Shown: positions 11,404 to 60,007 of the stretch, piece after piece | How the letters are laid out: each line of letters opens with the position of its first letter | How positions within the stretch are numbered: position 1 is the first letter of the stretch | Assembly (NCBI GenBank): GCA_977020255.1 | Contig: CDROCS010000253.1 | Coordinates: forward strand, 2,294,001-2,358,000 | Direction of reading: 5' to 3' | DNA length: 64,000 nt | Source of the DNA: Obrimoposthia wandeli | Taxonomy: Eukaryota | The notes under the pieces: model-generated | What the model was told of the DNA's origin: nothing | Seen by the model: the letters and a program-made list of their open reading frames with translations, nothing else | The model's database searches: none | Made by a program: the position numbers and the translations under genes

Positions 11404-12600
11404 TTGCGCGTTGCTGCTGTTTTTGGTTTGAATCAAATTGTTAGCCACGGATTTGGACTATTTTTATTTGCGGCTTTAGTGCCGCTAATGCGTGAGTCTA
11501 TTGCCATTACTAATTGGCATTTAGCCGCTATTGGTGCACTTACCCAATTGTCATACCTTGCGGGGGCATTATTACTCGGGTTTATTGGTAATAAAGTTTG
11601 TTCCGCACGACTGGTTTTAGTAACTGGTTCAATGACCACAGTATTGCTGTATAGCATGTCACAATTACAACATCCGTTAATGATTACTTTGGTACTGGTT
11701 GTGTTAGCCGCCAGTGCAGCTATTAGTTGGGGAGCGATTGTTGAAATTGTTGGGCGTCACTCTAAACCTGAAAGATGTTCCACTTATTTGTCTTTTGCTT
11801 CGAGTGGCACAGCATGGGGTTATGGGTTTAACGGTTTACTTATTTTACTGGTGGTGCCTACGCTGGGTTGGCAAAGTAGCTGGCAAATTGCGGCATTAGT
11901 TGGTTTGATCGTTGTTTCATTTACTTGGCGCTTATTAAGCAAATTGAACCGCAAACCATCAACTCATACCATCCCAGTACAAGCCATGATCCCAGCATCA
12001 AAGCTATTCTCTACCATTATCCGAGAACGTACCGCATTGTTTGCCTGCGTTGTGAGCTTATTGCTTGGGTTTTCCACTATGCCCTTTGCCAACTGGCTTA
12101 GTACCTACCTGAATGAATTACAATTACCCGCCACACTTGGCGGTTATACCTGGACTATTGCCGGAGTAACAGGCATGTTCGCCGGGGTTATTACAGGTTG
12201 GATTGCCGATCGCACCAGCCATGCTACGGCATTAATGATTATCTTTACCGGGTTTGCGCTCAGTTTAATGGCCTTTGTTTATGATCCTACTCAGTTTGCG
12301 GTTTTAGCTGGTTTTGGGTATGGACTAATGTATTTTCCTGTCTGGGGAATTTTGGCTGGTTGGATTCGGCAATCTTTCTCTTCTACTGCCACCATGCAAA
12401 TTTGCAGTATTTGCATGGTTACTTTTGGCTTAGGAGGCGCTTTGGGTAATCTGTTAGCTGGATATATTCGTGATGCTACTGGGTCATTAGCGCTTGTCTA
12501 TATCATAGTGACATTGACCGTAATATCGATGGTATTACTCACCTTAATAGTAATGCGGACAAGTCCAAGTAGTGATAGTAAGTTATCACTTACCGTATAG
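11404..12600 (+). CDS. MFS transporter (YbfB/YjiJ-like)
   Basis: About 12 hydrophobic helices; MFS loop motif GWIADRTS; GGAG RBS before the TTG start. Confidence 0.85.
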   Translation: MRVAAVFGLNQIVSHGFGLFLFAALVPLMRESIAITNWHLAAIGALTQLSYLAGALLLGFIGNKVCSARLVLVTGSMTTVLLYSMSQLQHPLMITLVLVVLAASAAISWGAIVEIVGRHSKPERCSTYLSFASSGTAWGYGFNGLLILLVVPTLGWQSSWQIAALVGLIVVSFTWRLLSKLNRKPSTHTIPVQAMIPASKLFSTIIRERTALFACVVSLLLGFSTMPFANWLSTYLNELQLPATLGGYTWTIAGVTGMFAGVITGWIADRTSHATALMIIFTGFALSLMAFVYDPTQFAVLAGFGYGLMYFPVWGILAGWIRQSFSSTATMQICSICMVTFGLGGALGNLLAGYIRDATGSLALVYIIVTLTVISMVLLTLIVMRTSPSSDSKLSLTV

Positions 12601-20489: not shown

Positions 20490-20684
20490 ATACCAATCGG
20501 ACTAAGCTTATTATAGCGAGAAGAGAATGGTTATTCAGCTCATTCTCTAAGAACACCATAATCCTCAAAATCAATAACGCCGCCTGTATGCCTTTTAAAC
20601 TCGTCCTTTGGAAGCTCATTAGCAAAAAACATGAATGAAACAGGGTTTTAGAAAAGCTGACCAATAAATTAATCCGTTTGGTAT
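20490..20684. mobile_element. ATACCAA-terminus miniature element
   Basis: ATACCAATCGGACTAA...TTAATCCGTTTGGTAT termini; core CAAAATCAATAACGC..C.TGTA.GCCTTTTAAACTCG shared with 33117. Confidence 0.8.
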
Positions 20685-31708: not shown

Positions 31709-32908
31709 CTAGCTCTTAAGTTGTTTTTCTGGCAGTTGTTCAAATAAGCTACTTGCTTGTAACCAAAACTGACTTGATATTTTATTGATAACATTCGATT
31801 CCGCATTAATGACTATGGCAAAGCCGATATCTAAATCGGGCGAATAACCTATATCAGCACGAAATCCTGCAACCCAGCCTGAATGATAAATAATGGGGTG
31901 GCCCTTAAATTGATAAATTCTCCAGCCATAACCGTAATGGGCATCGGTTAAGTGATCACGCCAAAAACGTCGGCGTAAGTCTTTTTTCGTTCTAATTCTA
32001 GGTGTTGTTAACTCTGCTAATAATGAGGCAGATAACACTGCTGGTTTATGCCCTAAATTAGCAATTAACCACTTGGCCAAATCGTTAATACTGGCATTAA
32101 CTCCAGCAGCAGGCGCTACTTTGTAAAAATCAGGCTCTACCTTTACGGTACGCCATATGTACTTTCTTATATTTCTACCTTGTGGATCTTTTTTTCCGGT
32201 CTTGATTCGTTTTCTAAGGATGTGAGGTTTTGCCGTATTTGTTTGCTCTTTATAAACATCAATGCCTACGGAGGCATCGGTCATATTGAGTGGCGTAAAG
32301 AGTCGATCTTGTAATAACGCAGCATAGCTTTTACTCTGGCTTGCTTCTATAGCAGGTTGTAATAGACCATAGGCTATATTTTGGTAGCCATAGCACTTTT
32401 CAGGCTGGCAAATAGGCGTAACGCGATCAAAACGGCCGATAATTTTATCCATCGTCCAGTTTTCATGGAGAAGATTATCGTAAGCGTTTGGCATCAAGCC
32501 ACTTGAGTGACTTAACAGATGTTTGAGTTGAATTTTTTGTGCTGCACCCGCTGTGGCTAAGGTAAAATGTGGTACGTATTTGGTAATAGGATCAGACAAT
32601 TTTAACAGCTGTTCTTGCGCTAACATGGTAGTTATTGTGGCGGCGAACGTTTTAGATACTGAGGCTAAGCGAAAGACAGTGTTGTTATCTACTTGATTGG
32701 ATTTAGCGTTATCAGTATGGCCGAAGTTCTCCATGGCAATAATTTTATTTTTTTTCACTATGGCATAAGCGCCGCCGGGAATACTATAGTGCTTGAGTTG
32801 CTTTTTAACTTGGGTAGAGAAGTTTTCTTTAAACTGACTAACATTACTCGCTGAGGAAAGGGGCGTTAAAAATAGCGCTAATAAAAAGCAAGACATTCTA
32901 AATAGCAT
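31709..32908 (-). CDS. Serine hydrolase, beta-lactamase class C-like
   Basis: Signal peptide; LASVSK (SxxK), YQN (YxN), HSG. Confidence 0.88.
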   Translation of the reverse strand: MLFRMSCFLLALFLTPLSSASNVSQFKENFSTQVKKQLKHYSIPGGAYAIVKKNKIIAMENFGHTDNAKSNQVDNNTVFRLASVSKTFAATITTMLAQEQLLKLSDPITKYVPHFTLATAGAAQKIQLKHLLSHSSGLMPNAYDNLLHENWTMDKIIGRFDRVTPICQPEKCYGYQNIAYGLLQPAIEASQSKSYAALLQDRLFTPLNMTDASVGIDVYKEQTNTAKPHILRKRIKTGKKDPQGRNIRKYIWRTVKVEPDFYKVAPAAGVNASINDLAKWLIANLGHKPAVLSASLLAELTTPRIRTKKDLRRRFWRDHLTDAHYGYGWRIYQFKGHPIIYHSGWVAGFRADIGYSPDLDIGFAIVINAESNVINKISSQFWLQASSLFEQLPEKQLKS

Positions 32909-33116
32909 AAACGGATCTCAGATTGAAAAGCCGATAAGTGTATAGGTCAAGGGAGAAAATAAAAAGCCTTTAATTTTTTAAGTGTTCTTTGCTCTGTAAA
33001 TACCCATTGCCATTCAAAGTACGTGATCAACAAGACTATGTAGTTGTACCTCTTTGTAATCGAATAACCCTTACTGCACAGTTGCTCCCTGTATTGAAAT
33101 TGCTCAAGCACTGGTA

Positions 33117-33380
33117 ATACCAATTCCAATAAGTTTCTTCCCACTCAGCGAGAGTTAAAAGGCTTAAAAGCAAGGCATTGATTGTAGATAATGGTTTTTC
33201 CCTTATCAAAATCAATAACGCAGCATGTAAGCCTTTTAAACTCGCCCTTCGGGAGCTTTCCAGTGACTCGATAACCGCATAGAATTTCTTTCATATAGAG
33301 TGACTATATGCAAAAAAATTCTATTTGTTCTCAAACCGCTGGCAAGCTCTGAGTGGGAACTAACTTAATGGACTTGGTAT
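33117..33380. mobile_element. ATACCAA-terminus miniature element, 264 bp
   Basis: ATACCAATTCCAATAAGTTTCTTCCCACTCAG...CTGAGTGGGAACTAACTTAATGGACTTGGTAT; core shared with 20490, 47382 and 50108. Confidence 0.85.
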
Positions 33381-36973: not shown

Positions 36974-37429
36974 ATGATTAACAATGACCTCCTTCGCCGC
37001 ATCAGCGCTATTTTTGACTTAACCGATGAAACTATCCTTACTACATTTGCGTTAAGTCAATGTGAAATTAGTGCGGAACAGTTAACTCACTTCTTCAAAG
37101 AGAAAGATGATAGCGCATACCAAGAAATAGAAGACGTACAATTTGCTAGCTTTTTAAATGGTTTAATCACTGCTAAACGTGGACCAAGTGAAGGACCTGA
37201 ACGTGAAAGTGAGCAAGAATTAACCAATAACATGATTTTTAATAAAGTAAAAATCGCGTTGTCTTTAAAAGCTGAAGAAGTGATTTCTATTCTTGAATTA
37301 GCCGAACTTAGTTTAGATAAACATGAGTTAAGCGCACTCTTTAGAAATGTAAACAATAAGCATTATAAAAATTGCTCTGATGAAGTTTTATCTGCATTTT
37401 TAAAAGGCTTAAAAATTAAAGCTAAATAA
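36974..37429 (+). CDS. DUF1456 (YehS-like) protein
   Basis: MINNDLLRR...FLNGLI..KRG...NNMIF.KVKIAL duplicated unit. Confidence 0.85.
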   Translation: MINNDLLRRISAIFDLTDETILTTFALSQCEISAEQLTHFFKEKDDSAYQEIEDVQFASFLNGLITAKRGPSEGPERESEQELTNNMIFNKVKIALSLKAEEVISILELAELSLDKHELSALFRNVNNKHYKNCSDEVLSAFLKGLKIKAK

Positions 37430-37566
37430 TGCGATCATTTTAGCTTCACAGCTAAGTTAATGAGTACCGCCTAGCTAGTGCATTCATCAAAATGTCATCT
37501 TTGTTTCATATTACTTTCATCTAACTCCCTTAAATTGCTATATAACGTTAGTGAGAGGAGAGTAAA

Positions 37567-37752
37567 ATGAATAATAAGTATTGGCATGATGCGGATGTTT
37601 TAGATGATGACGATGAACTAACAAGACCTGATAAAAAGGGTAAGGTTAGTGGTGGTAAAGAACGAAAACGTAAATGGCGTGAAATTGAAGCAATAAAAGA
37701 TCAACGCCGTTTAAGACGAGATATTGCCGCCTTTGAGCAATATTCGTTTTAG
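37567..37752 (+). CDS. DUF3545 family small protein
   Basis: KRKWREIEAIKDQRRL; GAGGAG RBS. Confidence 0.8.
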   Translation: MNNKYWHDADVLDDDDELTRPDKKGKVSGGKERKRKWREIEAIKDQRRLRRDIAAFEQYSF

Positions 37753-38082: not shown

Positions 38083-38099
38083 TGATACAAATTGATACA
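38083..38099 (+). promoter_or_regulatory. OmpR-family (RstA-type) direct-repeat box
   Basis: TGATACA-AAT-TGATACA, i.e. TACA-N6-TACA with 10-bp period, about 80 bp before the mipA ATG. Confidence 0.65.
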
Positions 38100-38181
38100 T
38101 CAGCTTAATTTGTGTTACGTCTATTTTTGTAAGGCTTGGTTAATATTACTGTTAACAAAAACAGACGTTCAAAGGGAATAT

Positions 38182-39258
38182 ATGAAACATATAACAAAAA
38201 TAGTCGTCGTTAACTTAATTACCACCAGTGTTGCTTTGACTTCTTTTGCTGCTAGCGCAAAGACTGATCTTGAAAAAAAGACCTCTGAGTCATTATCACT
38301 GCAGAAAAGTACTATAACTATCGCCAAGGTTAGCAGTGATAAAACTGATATTACTGAAGCAGATATTGTTGTCGATAGTAAAAATACCGTTAAAGAAATA
38401 GATACCCAGAAAGAATCAAAAACTGAGCCAAAAGACGACGATGAATTCTCTTTATGTATCGGTGACTGTGAAGATGAAGAGCATCATCAATCGCACAGTT
38501 GTGAGGAGAATGATGAAGATTGTGAAAAAGTCTATCGCTTCTTTCAAAACCGTCGTGATGGATTTTATGTTGATGTTAGTGCAATAAGTAGCGTTGGCGA
38601 TGATTATGCATTTGCCGCGAATGAAGATACTGAGTCAGAATTTGATGTAGCGATGAGTTACCGAGTACAGTTACTCGGGCTATTTATTGAATCACCGGGC
38701 ATTAGTACTAGACGAATTCAAGGACTGTATTCTATGCCTGCTTGGGGGGTGAATTTCTACAATAGCGAAGATTACTCTTTTGATTTGTTTTATCAATACA
38801 GTACGCGAGGCATTGAGGGGTTAGAAGGCATTCAAGTCCGAAATGAAGATGAACGTGCCGGACTTAGAATGACAGGGTTTTATGAAAATACTCAGCTGCA
38901 AATGATTTATTCACCTGTTAGCCGTAACGGTGAAGGTAGTGATGGTATAGAGGCTTCTATCTCATATAGTTATAACTGGCAGTTTAGAAATACGAATTTT
39001 TACACTAACCTCGGCATGCAATATCGCTCAAAAGAAGTAACGCCTTATGGTGTAAAAACGTGGATTGAAGATGATCTATCAACCTCAGCAGGTATTAGTT
39101 ATTCGGCTGAAATAGGTGTTGAATATCCGCTAACAACCGATTGGGTTATTGGTAGCTATGTTGGCTATAATGCACTGTCTGATCGTAGTATTACCGCCCG
39201 AAAAGATACCGTTGAAGACGGTGTTAGAGGCGGTCTTTTATTAACTTTCGTTTTTTAG
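38182..39258 (+). CDS. MipA/OmpV-family outer-membrane beta-barrel with acidic Cys/His N-terminal extension
   Basis: AGGGA RBS, signal peptide, alternating beta-strand pattern, C-terminal FVF, position before DUF3019-RR-HK. Confidence 0.75.
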   Translation: MKHITKIVVVNLITTSVALTSFAASAKTDLEKKTSESLSLQKSTITIAKVSSDKTDITEADIVVDSKNTVKEIDTQKESKTEPKDDDEFSLCIGDCEDEEHHQSHSCEENDEDCEKVYRFFQNRRDGFYVDVSAISSVGDDYAFAANEDTESEFDVAMSYRVQLLGLFIESPGISTRRIQGLYSMPAWGVNFYNSEDYSFDLFYQYSTRGIEGLEGIQVRNEDERAGLRMTGFYENTQLQMIYSPVSRNGEGSDGIEASISYSYNWQFRNTNFYTNLGMQYRSKEVTPYGVKTWIEDDLSTSAGISYSAEIGVEYPLTTDWVIGSYVGYNALSDRSITARKDTVEDGVRGGLLLTFVF

Positions 39259-39264
39259 GAGGGC

Positions 39265-39711
39265 ATGATTATGCACACTAAAAAACGTAATAAAATTAAA
39301 AAGCAGTTACAACGACTGTTTTTACAAATAAAAACGTCATGCTTATTGATGTTATTACTGGTAATAAGCTCTGTGGCGAATGCAACAGATATTCAAGCCA
39401 GCATGAAGGTAAGTCCTGAGCAATGTGTTGCTATGCGCCAAGGCCAGGCTTGTTATGTATCAGTCGAATTAAGTTGGCAAGTTGATACACCGGGTAATTA
39501 TTGCTTATATACAGCAGGGGAGTCCAAGGCGCTCAATTGTTGGATAAATAGTTCTGCGGGTGAATTGAAAAAGTCATTTGATAGTAAGGTTAATTTAGAA
39601 TTTTCCTTAAGGCGTCAAAATGAAAGCTTATCAGTAGTAACTGCAGTGGTAAAAATGGCATGGGTACATAAGAAAAAAGGTCAGCCAAGAAAGTCATGGC
39701 GCATTTTTTAA
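39265..39711 (+). CDS. DUF3019 family exported protein
   Basis: VSPEQCVAMRQGQAC...W...YCL...CW...W.....RKSWRIF. Confidence 0.82.
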   Translation: MIMHTKKRNKIKKQLQRLFLQIKTSCLLMLLLVISSVANATDIQASMKVSPEQCVAMRQGQACYVSVELSWQVDTPGNYCLYTAGESKALNCWINSSAGELKKSFDSKVNLEFSLRRQNESLSVVTAVVKMAWVHKKKGQPRKSWRIF

Positions 39712-39735
39712 AACATTAAATAGGATAAATAAATA

Positions 39736-40479
39736 ATGGCAGCACAAGCGGGATCGCATATTTTATTGGTAGAAGATGATATTGATCTCGCTGAGTGGAT
39801 AGCTGATTATTTAACCGGACGTGATTTTAAGGTAACCACTTGTCATCGCGGTGATGAAGCGGTTGACCTTATTCATTCACTAAACCCCGATATTGTTTTA
39901 CTTGATGGCATGCTGCCAGGGATGGATGGGCTCGATGTTTGTAAAACAGTTCGAGCCAGTTTTGATAACCCTATTATTATGATCACTGCACGTGATGAAG
40001 AAATCGACGAAGTGCTAGGGCTAGAAATGGGGGCAGATGATTATATTACTAAACCTGTTAGAGCGAGAGTATTACTAGCCCGTATTCGAGGTTTACTTCG
40101 TCGAGAAGATAAATCTCGTACCGCAAATAAAGCCAGTACTCATTTAACGGATGAACAACTTGAGTCCAAAGGAGTACTAAAATTTAGTGGTTTAGTGATT
40201 AGTGAACAAGCCAGAAGCGTTACCCTTGACGGAGAATTGATAAAAGTATCCTCTAATGAATTCGATGTTTTGTGGTTTCTCGCCACAAAAGCAGGGCAGG
40301 TAGTATCACGAAAAGAACTTGTTAGTCATTTTCGTGGTTTTGATTATGATGGCTTTGACCGCTCAATTGATTTACGTATTTCAAGATTACGTAAAAAACT
40401 AAAAGATGACTCCTCTGAGCCTTTTCGTATTAAAACTATTTGGGGCAAAGGCTACTTATTTGCCAATGATGTTTGGTAA
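39736..40479 (+). CDS. OmpR-family response regulator (RstA-like)
   Basis: ILLVEDD, LLDGMLPG, GADDYITKP, RSIDLRISRLRKKL, IKTIWGKGY. Confidence 0.95.
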   Translation: MAAQAGSHILLVEDDIDLAEWIADYLTGRDFKVTTCHRGDEAVDLIHSLNPDIVLLDGMLPGMDGLDVCKTVRASFDNPIIMITARDEEIDEVLGLEMGADDYITKPVRARVLLARIRGLLRREDKSRTANKASTHLTDEQLESKGVLKFSGLVISEQARSVTLDGELIKVSSNEFDVLWFLATKAGQVVSRKELVSHFRGFDYDGFDRSIDLRISRLRKKLKDDSSEPFRIKTIWGKGYLFANDVW

Positions 40480-40553
40480 TCACTTTGCTAGCCCTTGTCA
40501 ATATTACTCCTTTAAACCTTTTCTAGTCCCTTTAAACATAACTAGGTTAACTT

Positions 40554-41885
40554 ATGCGCTATTTAACACTTTCATTAGTTGCTGTGGTACTCATCGCCAC
40601 AATCGGTTTAGGTTGGATGTTTGATGGTATTTATAACCAATACCTCAATCAAAATATGGATCAAAACATTGAGCAAAGCTCAGGTCAACTACGTCAAGGG
40701 AATAATGGACAGCAAAGTGTCGTAGATGCCTTGGAGCTAGTGGGTACTCACTTATCTATAGCGCTTTCTGGTATCGATAATCGACAAGCGTTTATTGAAG
40801 AATGGCCAAGTAAAGGCATGTTGTCGTTACGCTTAAAGCCACTAACTAACTTCCCGCTACCACAAGCTTTACTTACTGATTTAATAGCAGGACAACCATT
40901 ATTACTTGAAACCGATGACAGTATCGCCATGCACTTTTACCTTGCTCGCACTGACGAACTATTGGTGTTAACCACGCCTCCGGTAACGGTTAACCAAACT
41001 AATTCATTTTTACCCATTTTACTGACTAGTTTATTTTATCTAGCGGTATTGTTATTAATGTTGCTTTGGCTTTACCCGCTTATGAGAAGGCTGATGACTT
41101 TACGTCAAACGGCTAAATCTTTTGGCGAAGGTAATTTGAATCAACGTATCGATGTTGGCTCTATTTCGTATATCCGTGATTTAGAGTTAGAGTTTAATCG
41201 CATGGCGCAGCGTATTGATGATTTAGTTACCGATATAAAACTATTAAGTAGTGCTGTTTCTCACGACTTACGGACGCCACTTGCACGTATCCGTTTTGGT
41301 ATTGATACTATTCAAGAAGAAGATGATCCTGTGTTGAGAAAGCGTTTTGAGCAACGTATTAGTGACAACGTTGATGAAATGGTTGATTTGGTGGAAAGTT
41401 TACTGAGTTACGCTCGTTTAGACCAAACCTTAATTACCTTAAACAAAGCACCCGTTGATTTTTCAGCACTGACGACTACCTGCATTAAAAACAAAAGCCA
41501 AGATGATGTTCAGCTGACATATGATTCGCCGAAACAGCCTGTATTCGTTGATGGCGATTTATCTTACTTGATGATTTTGATGAGTAACTTATTACAAAAT
41601 GCCCATCAATACTGTCAAGGGGAAATTCAGGTGAAAGTAACTGAGCAAGGCAATGACATTATTGTTACGGTTGCAGACAATGGACCGGGCATCCCGATAG
41701 CACAAAGAGAACAAATATTTAAACCTTTTATTCGCGGGCAAGGTACTGAAAAGAAGATTAAAGGTTACGGAATGGGCCTTGCTATCGTTAAGCGTATTGT
41801 TGAGTGGCACCATGGCGACATTATCATTGAAAACTCGCCAGAGTTACAAGGGGCAAAATTTAGTGTGACCTTACCTAAAGCGTAG
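40554..41885 (+). CDS. Sensor histidine kinase (RstB-like)
   Basis: Two TM, HAMP, HDLRTPL H-box, NLLQNA, DNGPG, GYGMGL. Confidence 0.95.
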   Translation: MRYLTLSLVAVVLIATIGLGWMFDGIYNQYLNQNMDQNIEQSSGQLRQGNNGQQSVVDALELVGTHLSIALSGIDNRQAFIEEWPSKGMLSLRLKPLTNFPLPQALLTDLIAGQPLLLETDDSIAMHFYLARTDELLVLTTPPVTVNQTNSFLPILLTSLFYLAVLLLMLLWLYPLMRRLMTLRQTAKSFGEGNLNQRIDVGSISYIRDLELEFNRMAQRIDDLVTDIKLLSSAVSHDLRTPLARIRFGIDTIQEEDDPVLRKRFEQRISDNVDEMVDLVESLLSYARLDQTLITLNKAPVDFSALTTTCIKNKSQDDVQLTYDSPKQPVFVDGDLSYLMILMSNLLQNAHQYCQGEIQVKVTEQGNDIIVTVADNGPGIPIAQREQIFKPFIRGQGTEKKIKGYGMGLAIVKRIVEWHHGDIIIENSPELQGAKFSVTLPKA

Positions 41886-47381: not shown

Positions 47382-47696
47382 TATACCCGCTCCACTTGAA
47401 GATGCTCGTTTCAGGAAGTTTGAGCGATTCATAATCAAGGCGCATTTTTTTATTAAGGGTCATTCAGGAGAATATGCTCCTGCATTCTCTAAAAAGCTAC
47501 ATCCATGTAGCGCCCTTAAAAAGAAAGGTAACGCAGAGTATGATTTGCTCAACCTTCCCCAAGGGGCTGGTTTAGAAACGCTTTAAGCTGCGTTATTGAT
47601 TTCGACAATAGAATAACTATTCTCTTCAATCAATGCCTTGCCTAAAGGCGTTTCTAATTCCAGCTGAATCATGCATCTTCAAGTGGAACGGGTATA
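47382..47696. mobile_element. Full-length ERIC-like composite element, 315 bp
   Basis: TATACCCGCTCCACTTGAAGATGC...GCATCTTCAAGTGGAACGGGTATA (24-bp near-perfect termini). Confidence 0.9.
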
Positions 47697-50107: not shown

Positions 50108-50370
50108 ATACCAAATGAAAAAATAAATGAGTCAATTCAGAGCTGTGTCAGGGAAGTTAGAACAAGCAAAATTTGTGCGTATATAGTCGTTCTATATCAA
50201 ACAAATTTGTGACGTATCACTTTCCTGACAAGCTCCCAAGGGCGAGTTTAAAAGGTTTATATGCAGCGTTATTGATTTTGACAAGGGAATAACCATTATC
50301 TTCAATCAATGCCTTGCCTCTAAACCTTTTAATTCTCGCTGAATGATCTATTAATTACTTCAATTGGTAT
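50108..50370. mobile_element. ATACCAA-terminus miniature element
   Basis: ATACCAAATGAA...TTCAATTGGTAT; internal core is the reverse complement of 33150-33257. Confidence 0.85.
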
Positions 50371-58560: not shown

Positions 58561-59592
58561 TTAGATGGCACAGCTTAAAGTTAACGAACCATAGCTGTGC
58601 CAAGACTTGTTATCGCTTTTATAGGCGCGGGTGTAACTATTTAAGCTCCAGGTAATAGCATAATTGTCTATTGTCCATTGCACCCCTAACACTGCTTTAG
58701 CTTGATTATGTTGGATATCAAGGTTTGATTCATAAGGTAGATCACCTTCAATGGTTAAATCGTTAAAGCGGTAGCCAAAGTGTAATCTTGAGTAAACAGT
58801 AAAGTTATTGCTGTTTTCAACTTGCGTGGTATTGCCAGTGTGGCCAAAATGACTACTTAAACGGCCAAAGGTATTATTTAAACTGGTTCCCCACCTAAAT
58901 AGTAATCCTAATGATGCCTCAGTGTTAAAATTACCTAAGGATAAGTGGCTATAACTACTTACTTCCCACTGATTATTATCTATGTATTTACTGTGATATC
59001 TTTTAGATCTAAATAGTAAAGAATCAACCTCATAGGCCAGCTGTAAAGTAACTTCTTCTTCTATTTGATACTGCCAACCCAAAGGGGGAATGGAACCAAT
59101 TAAATCATGAACTTTGGTTTGAACGTATTCGGCCTTAGATTTTATACCTGTAATACCTAGAGCAAGCCAGTTTTTTTGAGCGAATTTCGGACCATAATCA
59201 GCCGTGTGACTCTCTATCTCAAACAAACCCGCGTAAGGCCTATCATCATTTTGAAGCGTTATTATCCTAATATTATTTGGCGTCCAGATACGTTGGGATA
59301 TTTTCATTCCCCAGGCATTTTTTGTTTGAGTTAGTGGTAATCTCATAAGATATTGTAACTGAGATAGTTTTGGCATATTTGTGGAATTAGCATGTTGCTG
59401 GATAAATTCAGGCTTACTCTCCCATGCTAGTGAGAATCCGTTGGTATAATTTCCATCGTTGGCAAATACCCCATCATTTTCAAATTGAATATTTAATTGC
59501 CCTGCGCGAGCAGGTAGCATCACAATAATGAATATAAAACAAACAAAAGGAACTAATAGTTTTTTATTAGAGCGTGCTATTAACATAGTCAA
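58561..59592 (-). CDS. Lipid A deacylase LpxR-family (DUF2219) outer-membrane protein
   Basis: FENDG..ANDGNYTNG, IWTP..I......DRPYAG, WQYQI. Confidence 0.85.
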   Translation of the reverse strand: MTMLIARSNKKLLVPFVCFIFIIVMLPARAGQLNIQFENDGVFANDGNYTNGFSLAWESKPEFIQQHANSTNMPKLSQLQYLMRLPLTQTKNAWGMKISQRIWTPNNIRIITLQNDDRPYAGLFEIESHTADYGPKFAQKNWLALGITGIKSKAEYVQTKVHDLIGSIPPLGWQYQIEEEVTLQLAYEVDSLLFRSKRYHSKYIDNNQWEVSSYSHLSLGNFNTEASLGLLFRWGTSLNNTFGRLSSHFGHTGNTTQVENSNNFTVYSRLHFGYRFNDLTIEGDLPYESNLDIQHNQAKAVLGVQWTIDNYAITWSLNSYTRAYKSDNKSWHSYGSLTLSCAI

Positions 59593-59845: not shown

Positions 59846-60007
59846 ATGGCCCATGAGGAAAGACGTAATATGTCAAAAAATACTGATGTTAGTGTAGATG
59901 ATTGTAATCATGAGCAAAAATCAGCACTGGAACAATTAGCCGATGCAAACCATGAAATTGAAGATTTAAAGTCACAAATCGCTTGGCTTGAGCGTTCTTA
60001 CGAGTAG
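59846..60007 (+). CDS. Small coiled-coil hypothetical protein
   Basis: GGAGG RBS before ATG 59846 (alternative ATG 59870); heptad-like LADANHEIEDLKSQIAWLE. Confidence 0.6.
   Translation: MAHEERRNMSKNTDVSVDDCNHEQKSALEQLADANHEIEDLKSQIAWLERSYE

Follow-up and report, generated by a model that had tools for sequence, protein, structure and literature searches.

When an outer-membrane barrel and a small exported protein are encoded directly ahead of a two-component system, are they part of its sensor, part of its output, or both? This question is raised by a four-gene cassette in a 64,000-nucleotide stretch of DNA (contig CDROCS010000253.1, positions 2,294,001 to 2,358,000, filed under Obrimoposthia wandeli; hereafter the window), whose composition and best matches place it in Colwellia, near C. 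demingiae and C. psychrerythraea. Four plus-strand genes at 38182–41885 encode a MipA/OmpV-family barrel, a DUF3019 protein, an RstA-like response regulator and an RstB-like histidine kinase. A first-pass annotation had proposed that the barrel senses a ligand, that the DUF3019 protein relays the signal across the periplasm to the kinase, and that the regulator activates the operon in positive feedback through an upstream TACA-N6-TACA repeat. In the literature searched we found no mention of DUF3019. Our comparative analysis indicates that the cassette is very probably an autoregulated operon of the RstAB/CarRS type, with the repeat (the box) as its regulator's own site, as judged from sequence. 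The best explanation overall, which we favor with moderate confidence, is a self-controlled operon in which the barrel and the DUF3019 protein would be made under the control of the system and would also serve its kinase as co-sensors. The cassette comprises the following features:

38182–39258, plus strand: MipA/OmpV-family outer-membrane barrel, 358 amino acids
39265–39711, plus strand: DUF3019 protein, 148 amino acids
39736–40479, plus strand: OmpR/PhoB-class response regulator of the RstA/CarR type, 247 amino acids
40554–41885, plus strand: RstB/CarS-type histidine kinase, 443 amino acids
41892–41912, strand not assigned: GC-rich hairpin in the gap that separates the kinase gene from the convergent creA gene

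The four co-oriented, closely spaced genes of the first-pass annotation were borne out, with all four on the plus strand, intergenic gaps of 6, 24 and 74 nucleotides (nt), and a Pfam label on each product. The barrel open reading frame had been listed from a TTG at 38092; because AGGGA precedes the ATG at 38182 and a classical signal peptide follows it, we took this ATG as the start. Adjacency, shared strand and short gaps suggest that the genes form one transcription unit, and the hairpin is likely a bidirectional terminator that closes the operon.

We then asked how the unit might be controlled. Its promoter region contains three elements:

38086–38099, plus strand: TACA-N6-TACA tandem direct repeat TACAAATTGATACA within GATACAAATTGATACA, 96 nt before the barrel ATG
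38114–38122, plus strand: third half-site GTTACGTCT, defined by the consensus of a box-anchored alignment and overlapping the -35 position
38141–38146, plus strand: -10-like hexamer TAATAT, replaced by TAAGAT, TAGTAT or TAGGCT in relatives

The box is therefore present where the annotation had placed it, with its center ~62 nt upstream of the predicted transcription start, and is presumed to be the site for a dimer of the cassette's own regulator. In the box-anchored alignment, the third half-site has the consensus (G)(A/T)TAC(G/A), lies 21 nt (two helical turns) after the second TACA, reads TGTTACA in the Cellvibrio group, and is followed by a T-rich stretch and the -10-like hexamer. A scan for sigma-70 consensus promoters gave no match at the cassette promoter, which has no good -35 hexamer, and this fits an activator-dependent promoter. 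Activator half-sites that reach the -35 position are the usual layout of promoters activated by OmpR/PhoB-class regulators, and the positive autoregulation proposed at first pass is a sound reading of the arrangement. Within the window the bare TACA-N6-TACA pattern occurs at the chance rate (3 matches versus 3.4 expected from shuffles), so the weight of the box rests on its conservation across genera.

To assess that conservation we assembled 80 DUF3019-encoding loci from species-representative genomes, found with two peptide patterns taken from a DUF3019 alignment and numbered here with the prefix L. Several are metagenome bins, possibly with errors, and one (L042) contains a run of N that was left in. 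Among the 76 loci with enough upstream DNA to be scored, 58 carry an exact TACA-N6-TACA on the coding strand 50–160 nt before the barrel gene, in most genera at -91 to -98 from the start codon; the flanks of the box are unrelated between genera while the box itself is retained. Both strands of the locus sample (1.05 Mb in total) contain 104 occurrences of the pattern, with a background of ~0.03 per kb once operon sites are excluded. Sixteen of the 18 loci without a box directly 5′ of the barrel gene have it before an extra first gene: a co-directional TonB-dependent receptor gene in 13, a second barrel gene in two, and two open reading frames in one (L056). In the Cellvibrio group the receptor gene sits <75 nt ahead of the barrel gene and the box lies upstream of the receptor gene, and in L033 and L049 the second barrel gene comes first and has the box. 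Because the position of the box shifts with the extra receptor or barrel gene, the box keeps to whichever gene opens the unit. Where the receptor gene is divergent, as in four loci, there is a second box, inverted and directed at that gene; in Catenovulum and Algibacillus the shared intergenic region has two boxes, one facing each gene. L077 has a one-mismatch box (TACG) at -99.

Because these loci had been chosen by DUF3019 peptide patterns, we added an independent, profile-picked sample. Word-based protein searches reached little past Colwellia and its close relatives, and a profile search was needed to size the family: across 1.84 billion protein representatives, DUF3019 returned 960 clusters at E ≤ 0.001. 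From within the best 150 profile matches we took the four members least similar to the 80 loci that lay on long contigs, using no DNA-motif criterion. Independent gene calls and Pfam labels gave the same four genes in the same order in all four metagenomic loci, and three carry an exact box 83–98 nt before the first gene of the unit, the fourth having only a one-mismatch candidate. The prediction that orthologues would carry the box at a fixed position is thus upheld in both samples.

The window contains two further matches to the pattern, neither of which we retain as a regulon site. One, at 33045–33058, lies ~140 nt upstream of a minus-strand beta-lactamase-fold (PF00144) gene (31709–32908; 5 kb from the cassette); the gene was an attractive candidate, P. 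aeruginosa MipB having this fold, but the box is not retained in the two gene-sharing relatives (L004 and L007). The other, at 59893–59906, is followed by TTACGTCT and lies ~300 nt upstream of a minus-strand lpxR gene (58561–59592; lipid A 3′-O-deacylase); its first TACA is absent in all 10 orthologous metagenomic loci that reach the position (11 compared), and the local conservation nearby stems from a divergent coding region. Both are best read as chance matches, in agreement with the 3.4 expected.

If the box is a regulator site, does the regulator of the cassette have the means to read it? The regulator carries the Pfam domains Response_reg and Trans_reg_C with acceptor Asp57, and the kinase carries HAMP, HisKA (His237) and HATPase_c. 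Their best NCBIfam matches are RstA (NF007977; 265.5 bits, below the equivalog cut-off of 330) and RstB (NF007898; 219.7 bits, below the cut-off of 478); full-length identity to E. coli RstA is 46% for the regulator, and the kinase shares 28% of its residues with E. coli RstB. The premise that RstA-type regulators bind TACA-N6-TACA holds: E. coli RstA binds TACATNTNGTTACA, and K. pneumoniae RstA makes its base contacts through Arg199, Val203 and Arg207 of the recognition helix (PMC4117788). The corresponding helix here spans residues 208–222 (40357–40401; D-R-S-I-D-L-R-I-S-R-L-R-K-K-L), and the contact-equivalent residues Arg209, Leu/Ile213 and Arg217 are kept in 48, 48 and 46 of 48 non-redundant cassettes. 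Across these cassettes the helix as a whole varies hardly at all, and neither the acceptor Asp nor the kinase His varies. The regulator is accordingly RstA-like by best family match, identity and retained base-contact residues, and because the helix and its contacts are retained in an RstA-like protein, self-activation through the box is well supported by inference. The kinase has a membrane helix at residues 5–23, a periplasmic domain at about residues 24–152 (40623–41009) and a second membrane helix. No part of the cassette is less conserved than this periplasmic domain (27% mean identity), which is acidic, with a mean net charge of -7.4.

The arrangement of the genes is conserved as well. 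All four occur in the same order and on the same strand in 72 of the 80 loci, 71 as separate open reading frames plus L045, in which the stop codon after W-R-V-F is missing and DUF3019 runs on, in frame, into the regulator gene (L045:6914–8194); this fusion may be a sequencing error in a genome bin or a real read-through. Six further loci are interrupted by contig ends. Median gaps across loci are 6, 10 and 24 nt, with many gene overlaps. The loci belong to Colwellia, Psychrobium, Psychrosphaera, Kangiellaceae, Catenovulum, Algibacillus, Planctobacterium, Pseudoalteromonas, Paraglaciecola, Brumicola, Cellvibrio and Granulosicoccaceae (at least 12 genera overall). Co-conservation of DUF3019 with mipA, on which the original proposal depended, was seen in every locus having upstream DNA, and co-conservation with a two-component system in all loci except two (L028 and L065). 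In L028 a boxed barrel–DUF3019 pair (L028:6080–7387) has no adjacent two-component system and is followed by histidine-utilization genes; it shares a genome bin with a full cassette (L029) and is presumably regulated in trans. L033, L049 and L059 have barrel genes duplicated in tandem.

Other genes accompany the cassette in some loci. A TonB-dependent receptor of ~680 residues is attached to the cassette in L046 (3955–6000), L034, L037, L054, L057, L082, L083 and others, either as the first gene of the unit (Cellvibrio group) or divergently with an inverted box (Catenovulum and Algibacillus). For the substrate class of this receptor, no specific NCBIfam family came near its threshold. In L045 all three half-sites of the box stand immediately ahead of a beta-lactamase-fold (PF00144) gene placed just after the kinase gene (L045:9568–10838); a boxed gene of this kind was seen in L045 only, and it recalls P. 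aeruginosa MipB. In one metagenomic cassette the kinase gene is followed by a gene for a PagL-like lipid A deacylase (L085:6226–6804), and in another a triple TACA site (L084:10097–10120), 2.7 kb past the kinase gene, precedes a gene for a Gly-zipper protein; these two genes are possible further regulon members. Five Pseudoalteromonas luteoviolacea loci (L053, L055, L058, L060 and L061, at ~12467–12498) share a conserved TACACATTGTTACA ~3 kb downstream of the cassette, preceding a 132-residue open reading frame without a Pfam match. This last conservation is weak evidence because the strains are close relatives.

What, then, are the two envelope proteins? The DUF3019 protein matches PF11456 over its entire length (95.3 bits, profile positions 1–102 of 102) and, in keeping with the first-pass description of an exported, Cys-rich protein, has a type I signal peptide to Ala40, cleaved after A-N-A to leave ~108 mature residues, and four invariant cysteines (Cys54, Cys63, Cys80 and Cys92). 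Family alignments further reveal the loop C-V-A-x-x-Q-G-Q-x-C, several invariant Trp residues and an invariant extreme C-terminus. The four cysteines more likely form two loop-closing disulfides in the periplasm than serve as metal ligands. AlphaFold2 predicts a confident immunoglobulin (Ig)-like beta-sandwich at residues 45–130 (mean predicted local distance difference test score 84.3 for the whole protein) and a low-confidence tail. A Foldseek comparison with solved structures returned only generic Ig-like matches (RhoGDI, PDE-delta and glycosidase domains; best E = 0.01, template modeling (TM) score <0.45), and consequently no function can be read from the fold. The basic tail, residues 131–148 (39655–39708), ends in W-R-I-F in the window protein; among 141 representatives of 50% identity clusters, 140 finish with W-[RK]-hydrophobic-F, and the net charge over the final 16 residues averages +4.7. 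Two other identities were considered and set aside. A lipoprotein resembling RcsF, NlpE or MipB is contradicted by a lipobox-like string in just 5 of the 141 representatives, and the aromatic spacing of the tail seems unsuitable for an outer-membrane-protein beta-signal or a DegS-activating Y-x-F motif.

The barrel matches Pfam MipA (PF06629) at 32.4 bits against a cut-off of 24.2, a match that covers only residues 186–334; the same family is matched by all 38 cassette orthologues (best E = 6e-37). The protein has a signal peptide at residues 1–26 ending in A-S-A and a C-terminal Phe, and AlphaFold2 predicts a barrel of 12 strands at about residues 127–358 (38560–39255), with low confidence at about residues 26–110. 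The best match among solved structures is the copper channel PcoB (7pge; TM score 0.72 on the target), and Pfam CopB matches neither the window barrel nor the 38 orthologues. Between signal peptide and barrel lies a disordered extension rich in Asp, Glu, Lys and Ser (residues 27–126; 38260–38559), acidic in the window protein, with four Cys, three His and a Cys/His/acidic cluster near its end. This variable extension is confined to the Colwellia/Psychrobium/Psychrosphaera clade and is missing from the other genera. Several versions are very rich in His and Asp, with repeated H-E-K units in L020 and L021 and stretches of H and D in L022 and L025; these features, reminiscent of the PcoB N-terminus, hint at binding of cations or metal. 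Across the family the barrel domain has a net negative charge (mean -12.6), and a crude count of lumen-facing strand residues in the window barrel gives 5 K/R versus 10 D/E. Functionally, a MipA protein is recognized by its interaction with MltA and PBP1B, as defined in E. coli, or by polymyxin binding within an electronegative lumen.

Two pathogen systems provide the closest precedents. In V. cholerae, CarRS (VprAB) is co-transcribed with the MipA-family gene ompV and with virK, polymyxin B induces the operon, and OmpV has been proposed as a sensor, with VirK possibly mediating in the periplasm (PMC12012098); CarR is found at the ompV promoter (PMC9178039), and CarSR is homologous to RstAB (PMC5385354). 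The cassette is likewise a four-gene operon that combines an RstAB-homologous system, a MipA/OmpV barrel and an accessory protein, and the V. cholerae operon is induced via its own regulator, as this one probably is. The gene order is reversed, however, with the barrel first and the two-component system last, and the accessory component is a DUF3019 protein (~108 mature residues, Ig-like) instead of the 36 kDa VirK/YbjX, for which we found no Pfam match within the cassette. The hosts also differ, being cold-marine and aquatic non-pathogens, and the box is far better conserved than any described CarR site.

In P. aeruginosa, MipA binds polymyxins, deletion of mipBA lowers ParRS output, and two-component system genes adjoin mipA in most taxa (PMC10936184). 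The first-pass premise that this MipA is a polymyxin sensor feeding a two-component system holds as to its content (PMC10936184), but as a proposed model rather than the established fact it was taken for. There, too, a MipA barrel gene stands beside the gene for a periplasm-facing partner, and MipA and MipB are both induced by the two-component system and proposed as kinase co-sensors (PMC10936184). The partner in that case is the beta-lactamase-fold lipoprotein MipB, which has no counterpart in the cassette, where DUF3019 occupies its place; the ParRS genes lie outside the mipBA operon, whereas the cassette encodes its own regulator, of the RstA type. Since its third component and gene order differ from both, the cassette belongs to neither the carRS–ompV–virK nor the MipA/MipB–ParRS class.

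Three other systems offer comparisons. RstAB of E. coli and Klebsiella shares the domain architecture, the TACA-N6-TACA repeat and the base-contacting Arg/hydrophobic/Arg positions (PMC4117788), but neither mipA nor a DUF3019 gene adjoins rstAB in E. coli, and E. coli rstA is under PhoP control with no autoregulatory triple site known. PcoB/CopB–PcoRS resembles the cassette in its twelve-stranded barrel, disordered N-terminus and operon with a two-component system; the likeness in sequence ends there, since a Met/His-rich N-terminal copper-binding region marks PcoB/CopB proteins, whereas the extension here is acidic and restricted to the Colwellia clade, and the regulator family differs. Small, disulfide-bonded, barrel-associated envelope proteins that report stress at the outer membrane or from cationic peptides to an inner-membrane protein are known from RcsF, which is threaded through outer-membrane proteins and signals to IgaA/Rcs, and from NlpE–OmpA, which signals to CpxA; RcsF also has a positively charged flexible segment. 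The DUF3019 protein is not a lipoprotein, carries its charged segment at the C-terminus and has no sequence or fold relation to either, leaving an analogy only. NlpE is also cited in the P. aeruginosa study (PMC10936184). New to the present cassette are the strict linkage of DUF3019 to the barrel, the DUF3019 fold and tail motif, a three-half-site operator spanning at least 12 genera, and the recurrent recruitment of TonB-dependent receptors.

On this basis we propose that the phosphorylated regulator would bind the TACA-N6-TACA pair head-to-tail and also occupy the third TAC(G/A) half-site at -35, recruiting RNA polymerase to a promoter that lacks a -35 element of its own, with positive feedback on all four genes as the outcome. 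The barrel and the DUF3019 protein would act as a fixed pair at the outer membrane and in the periplasm and, in the reading we prefer, would be both a product of the system and a modulator, or co-sensor, of the kinase. The basic W-R-x-F tail may find its acidic docking partner in the barrel or in the periplasmic domain of the kinase, and the cue would likely be cationic envelope stress, from cationic peptides, metal or other divalent cations. Observed are the gene content and order, the placement and retention of the box, the RstA-like DNA-reading head, the predicted folds and the tail motif; that the regulator binds the box, that it activates and does not repress, the protein contacts and the cue are all parts of this scheme that we infer. 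Its components differ in strength. A physical pairing of barrel and DUF3019 seems probable from the sequence comparisons: DUF3019 was never seen without a barrel gene in the loci examined, its tail (+4.7) is complementary in charge to both the barrel domain (-12.6) and the kinase periplasmic domain (-7.4), and in a mirror-tree analysis, in which all cassette parts co-diverge (r = 0.72–0.88), residual co-divergence, once the signal shared with the cytoplasmic parts had been subtracted, was highest for tail versus barrel (partial r 0.54, compared with 0.23 for tail versus kinase sensor). That the pair passes information to the kinase is a more tentative suggestion, somewhat less likely than not; a relay from barrel through DUF3019 to kinase is plausible and resembles the models proposed for the two pathogen systems above. 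A specific version, in which the tail plugs the electronegative lumen or lateral gate of the barrel, cationic ligands displace it, and the freed domain or tail engages the kinase periplasmic domain, is speculative and on balance improbable; if true, it would amount to RcsF-like logic executed by a soluble protein with a private barrel, and would be the first defined input route to an RstB/CarS-type kinase.

Several observations weigh against this co-sensor scheme or limit it. The regulator and kinase fall below the RstA and RstB equivalog cut-offs, and the DNA specificity of the regulator is therefore carried over from RstA by homology. In a Cellvibrio metagenome-assembled genome the kinase gene is replaced by that of an unrelated 872-residue secreted Ser-rich protein (L065:8237–10855). 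Charge complementarity suits either acidic partner and could be coincidence, and the mirror-tree partial correlations are weak, confounded by differences in evolutionary rate and suggestive only. The orphan boxed pair of L028 shows that the pair is a regulon target, not that it is a sensor, and receptor genes under the same box point to a role in output or uptake. Orphan pair and co-regulated receptors together suggest that, at the least, the system has the barrel and DUF3019 among its outputs.

The strongest rival takes this last point to its conclusion: the kinase would sense alone, and the barrel, DUF3019 and, where it occurs, the receptor would be its main regulon products. They could form an inducible channel across the outer membrane, partnered in the periplasm by a binding protein or chaperone and serving uptake, exclusion or envelope protection, and their position in the operon would reflect co-expression rather than signaling. 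We consider this account a serious one, if rather unlikely. It gains from the L028 pair without its own two-component system, from receptor genes placed under the same box in two independent arrangements, from the tandem barrel duplications, from the other boxed neighbors (the beta-lactamase-fold gene of L045 and the Gly-zipper gene of L084), and from ompV being a CarR target in V. cholerae (PMC9178039). It does not readily accommodate the findings that mipBA deletion lowers ParRS-dependent mexXY induction (PMC10936184) and that vexB induction requires ompV (PMC12012098), nor the placement of the pair before the regulator and kinase genes in nearly all genomes, which is typical of accessory sensors; it also leaves room for feedback. 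The co-sensor and output readings are compatible, and both apply in the sister systems.

Two further explanations are harder to sustain. The cassette could be a pco/cop-like metal module, with a PcoB-like cation channel whose disordered N-terminal region captures metal, DUF3019 cysteines as metal ligands and a metal-responsive two-component system. The structural match to PcoB, which likewise has a disordered metal-binding N-terminus, and the His/Asp/Glu/Cys-rich extensions of the Colwellia clade speak for such a module, as do the operon of pcoB with the PcoRS two-component system and the common use of TonB-dependent receptors in metal import. Yet the extension is absent from most family members, DUF3019 has no invariant His or Met and its fold matches are generic Ig-like ones only (best E = 0.01), the barrel has no Pfam CopB match, and the regulator is of the RstA rather than the CusR/CopR type, which together make a metal module quite improbable. 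Finally, the box might have arisen by chance or serve some unrelated regulator, and the four genes might be neighbors with no functional link. The chance-level count in the window and the lack of conservation of its two other copies are what this view would predict, but the comparative data already contradict it: the position of the box is conserved across genera with unrelated flanks and shifts with the first gene, the recognition helix is almost invariant, and gene order is kept in 72 of 80 loci, so that it is hardly tenable.

Around the cassette, two small conserved genes (36974–37752) just upstream of its promoter encode DUF1456 and DUF3545 proteins, the latter of 61 residues and matching the PA3496 family (a putative envelope integrity protein) only weakly, and 17 Colwellia loci retain the convergent creA gene downstream. 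An intergenic repeat of ~115 nt is dispersed through the window in four copies with 77–90% identity (33142–33258; 47558–47667 and 50230–50345, both on the minus strand; and 20565–20616), with several more in the C. demingiae locus L001, and looks like a small non-coding mobile or repetitive extragenic palindromic (REP)-type element. Rfam and tRNA scans found no RNA genes in the window.

Collectively, these results place the cassette as a widespread third variant of an arrangement in which a co-sensor role for MipA/OmpV proteins has so far only been proposed, and in two pathogens. Because DUF3019 is tractable, its motif defined and the operator conserved, the question of how a barrel might inform a kinase becomes testable in non-pathogenic marine bacteria: the protein is small, soluble and easily purified, with a mutable W-R-x-F tail and a Q-G-Q loop probably closed by a disulfide, and the well-conserved operator can serve as a ready reporter. 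Should the barrel and DUF3019 turn out to be outputs only, the system would still represent a clean autoregulated RstAB-type regulon with a three-half-site promoter. In either case, the cassette gives DUF3019 its first functional context and a testable role as a partner of barrel and two-component system.

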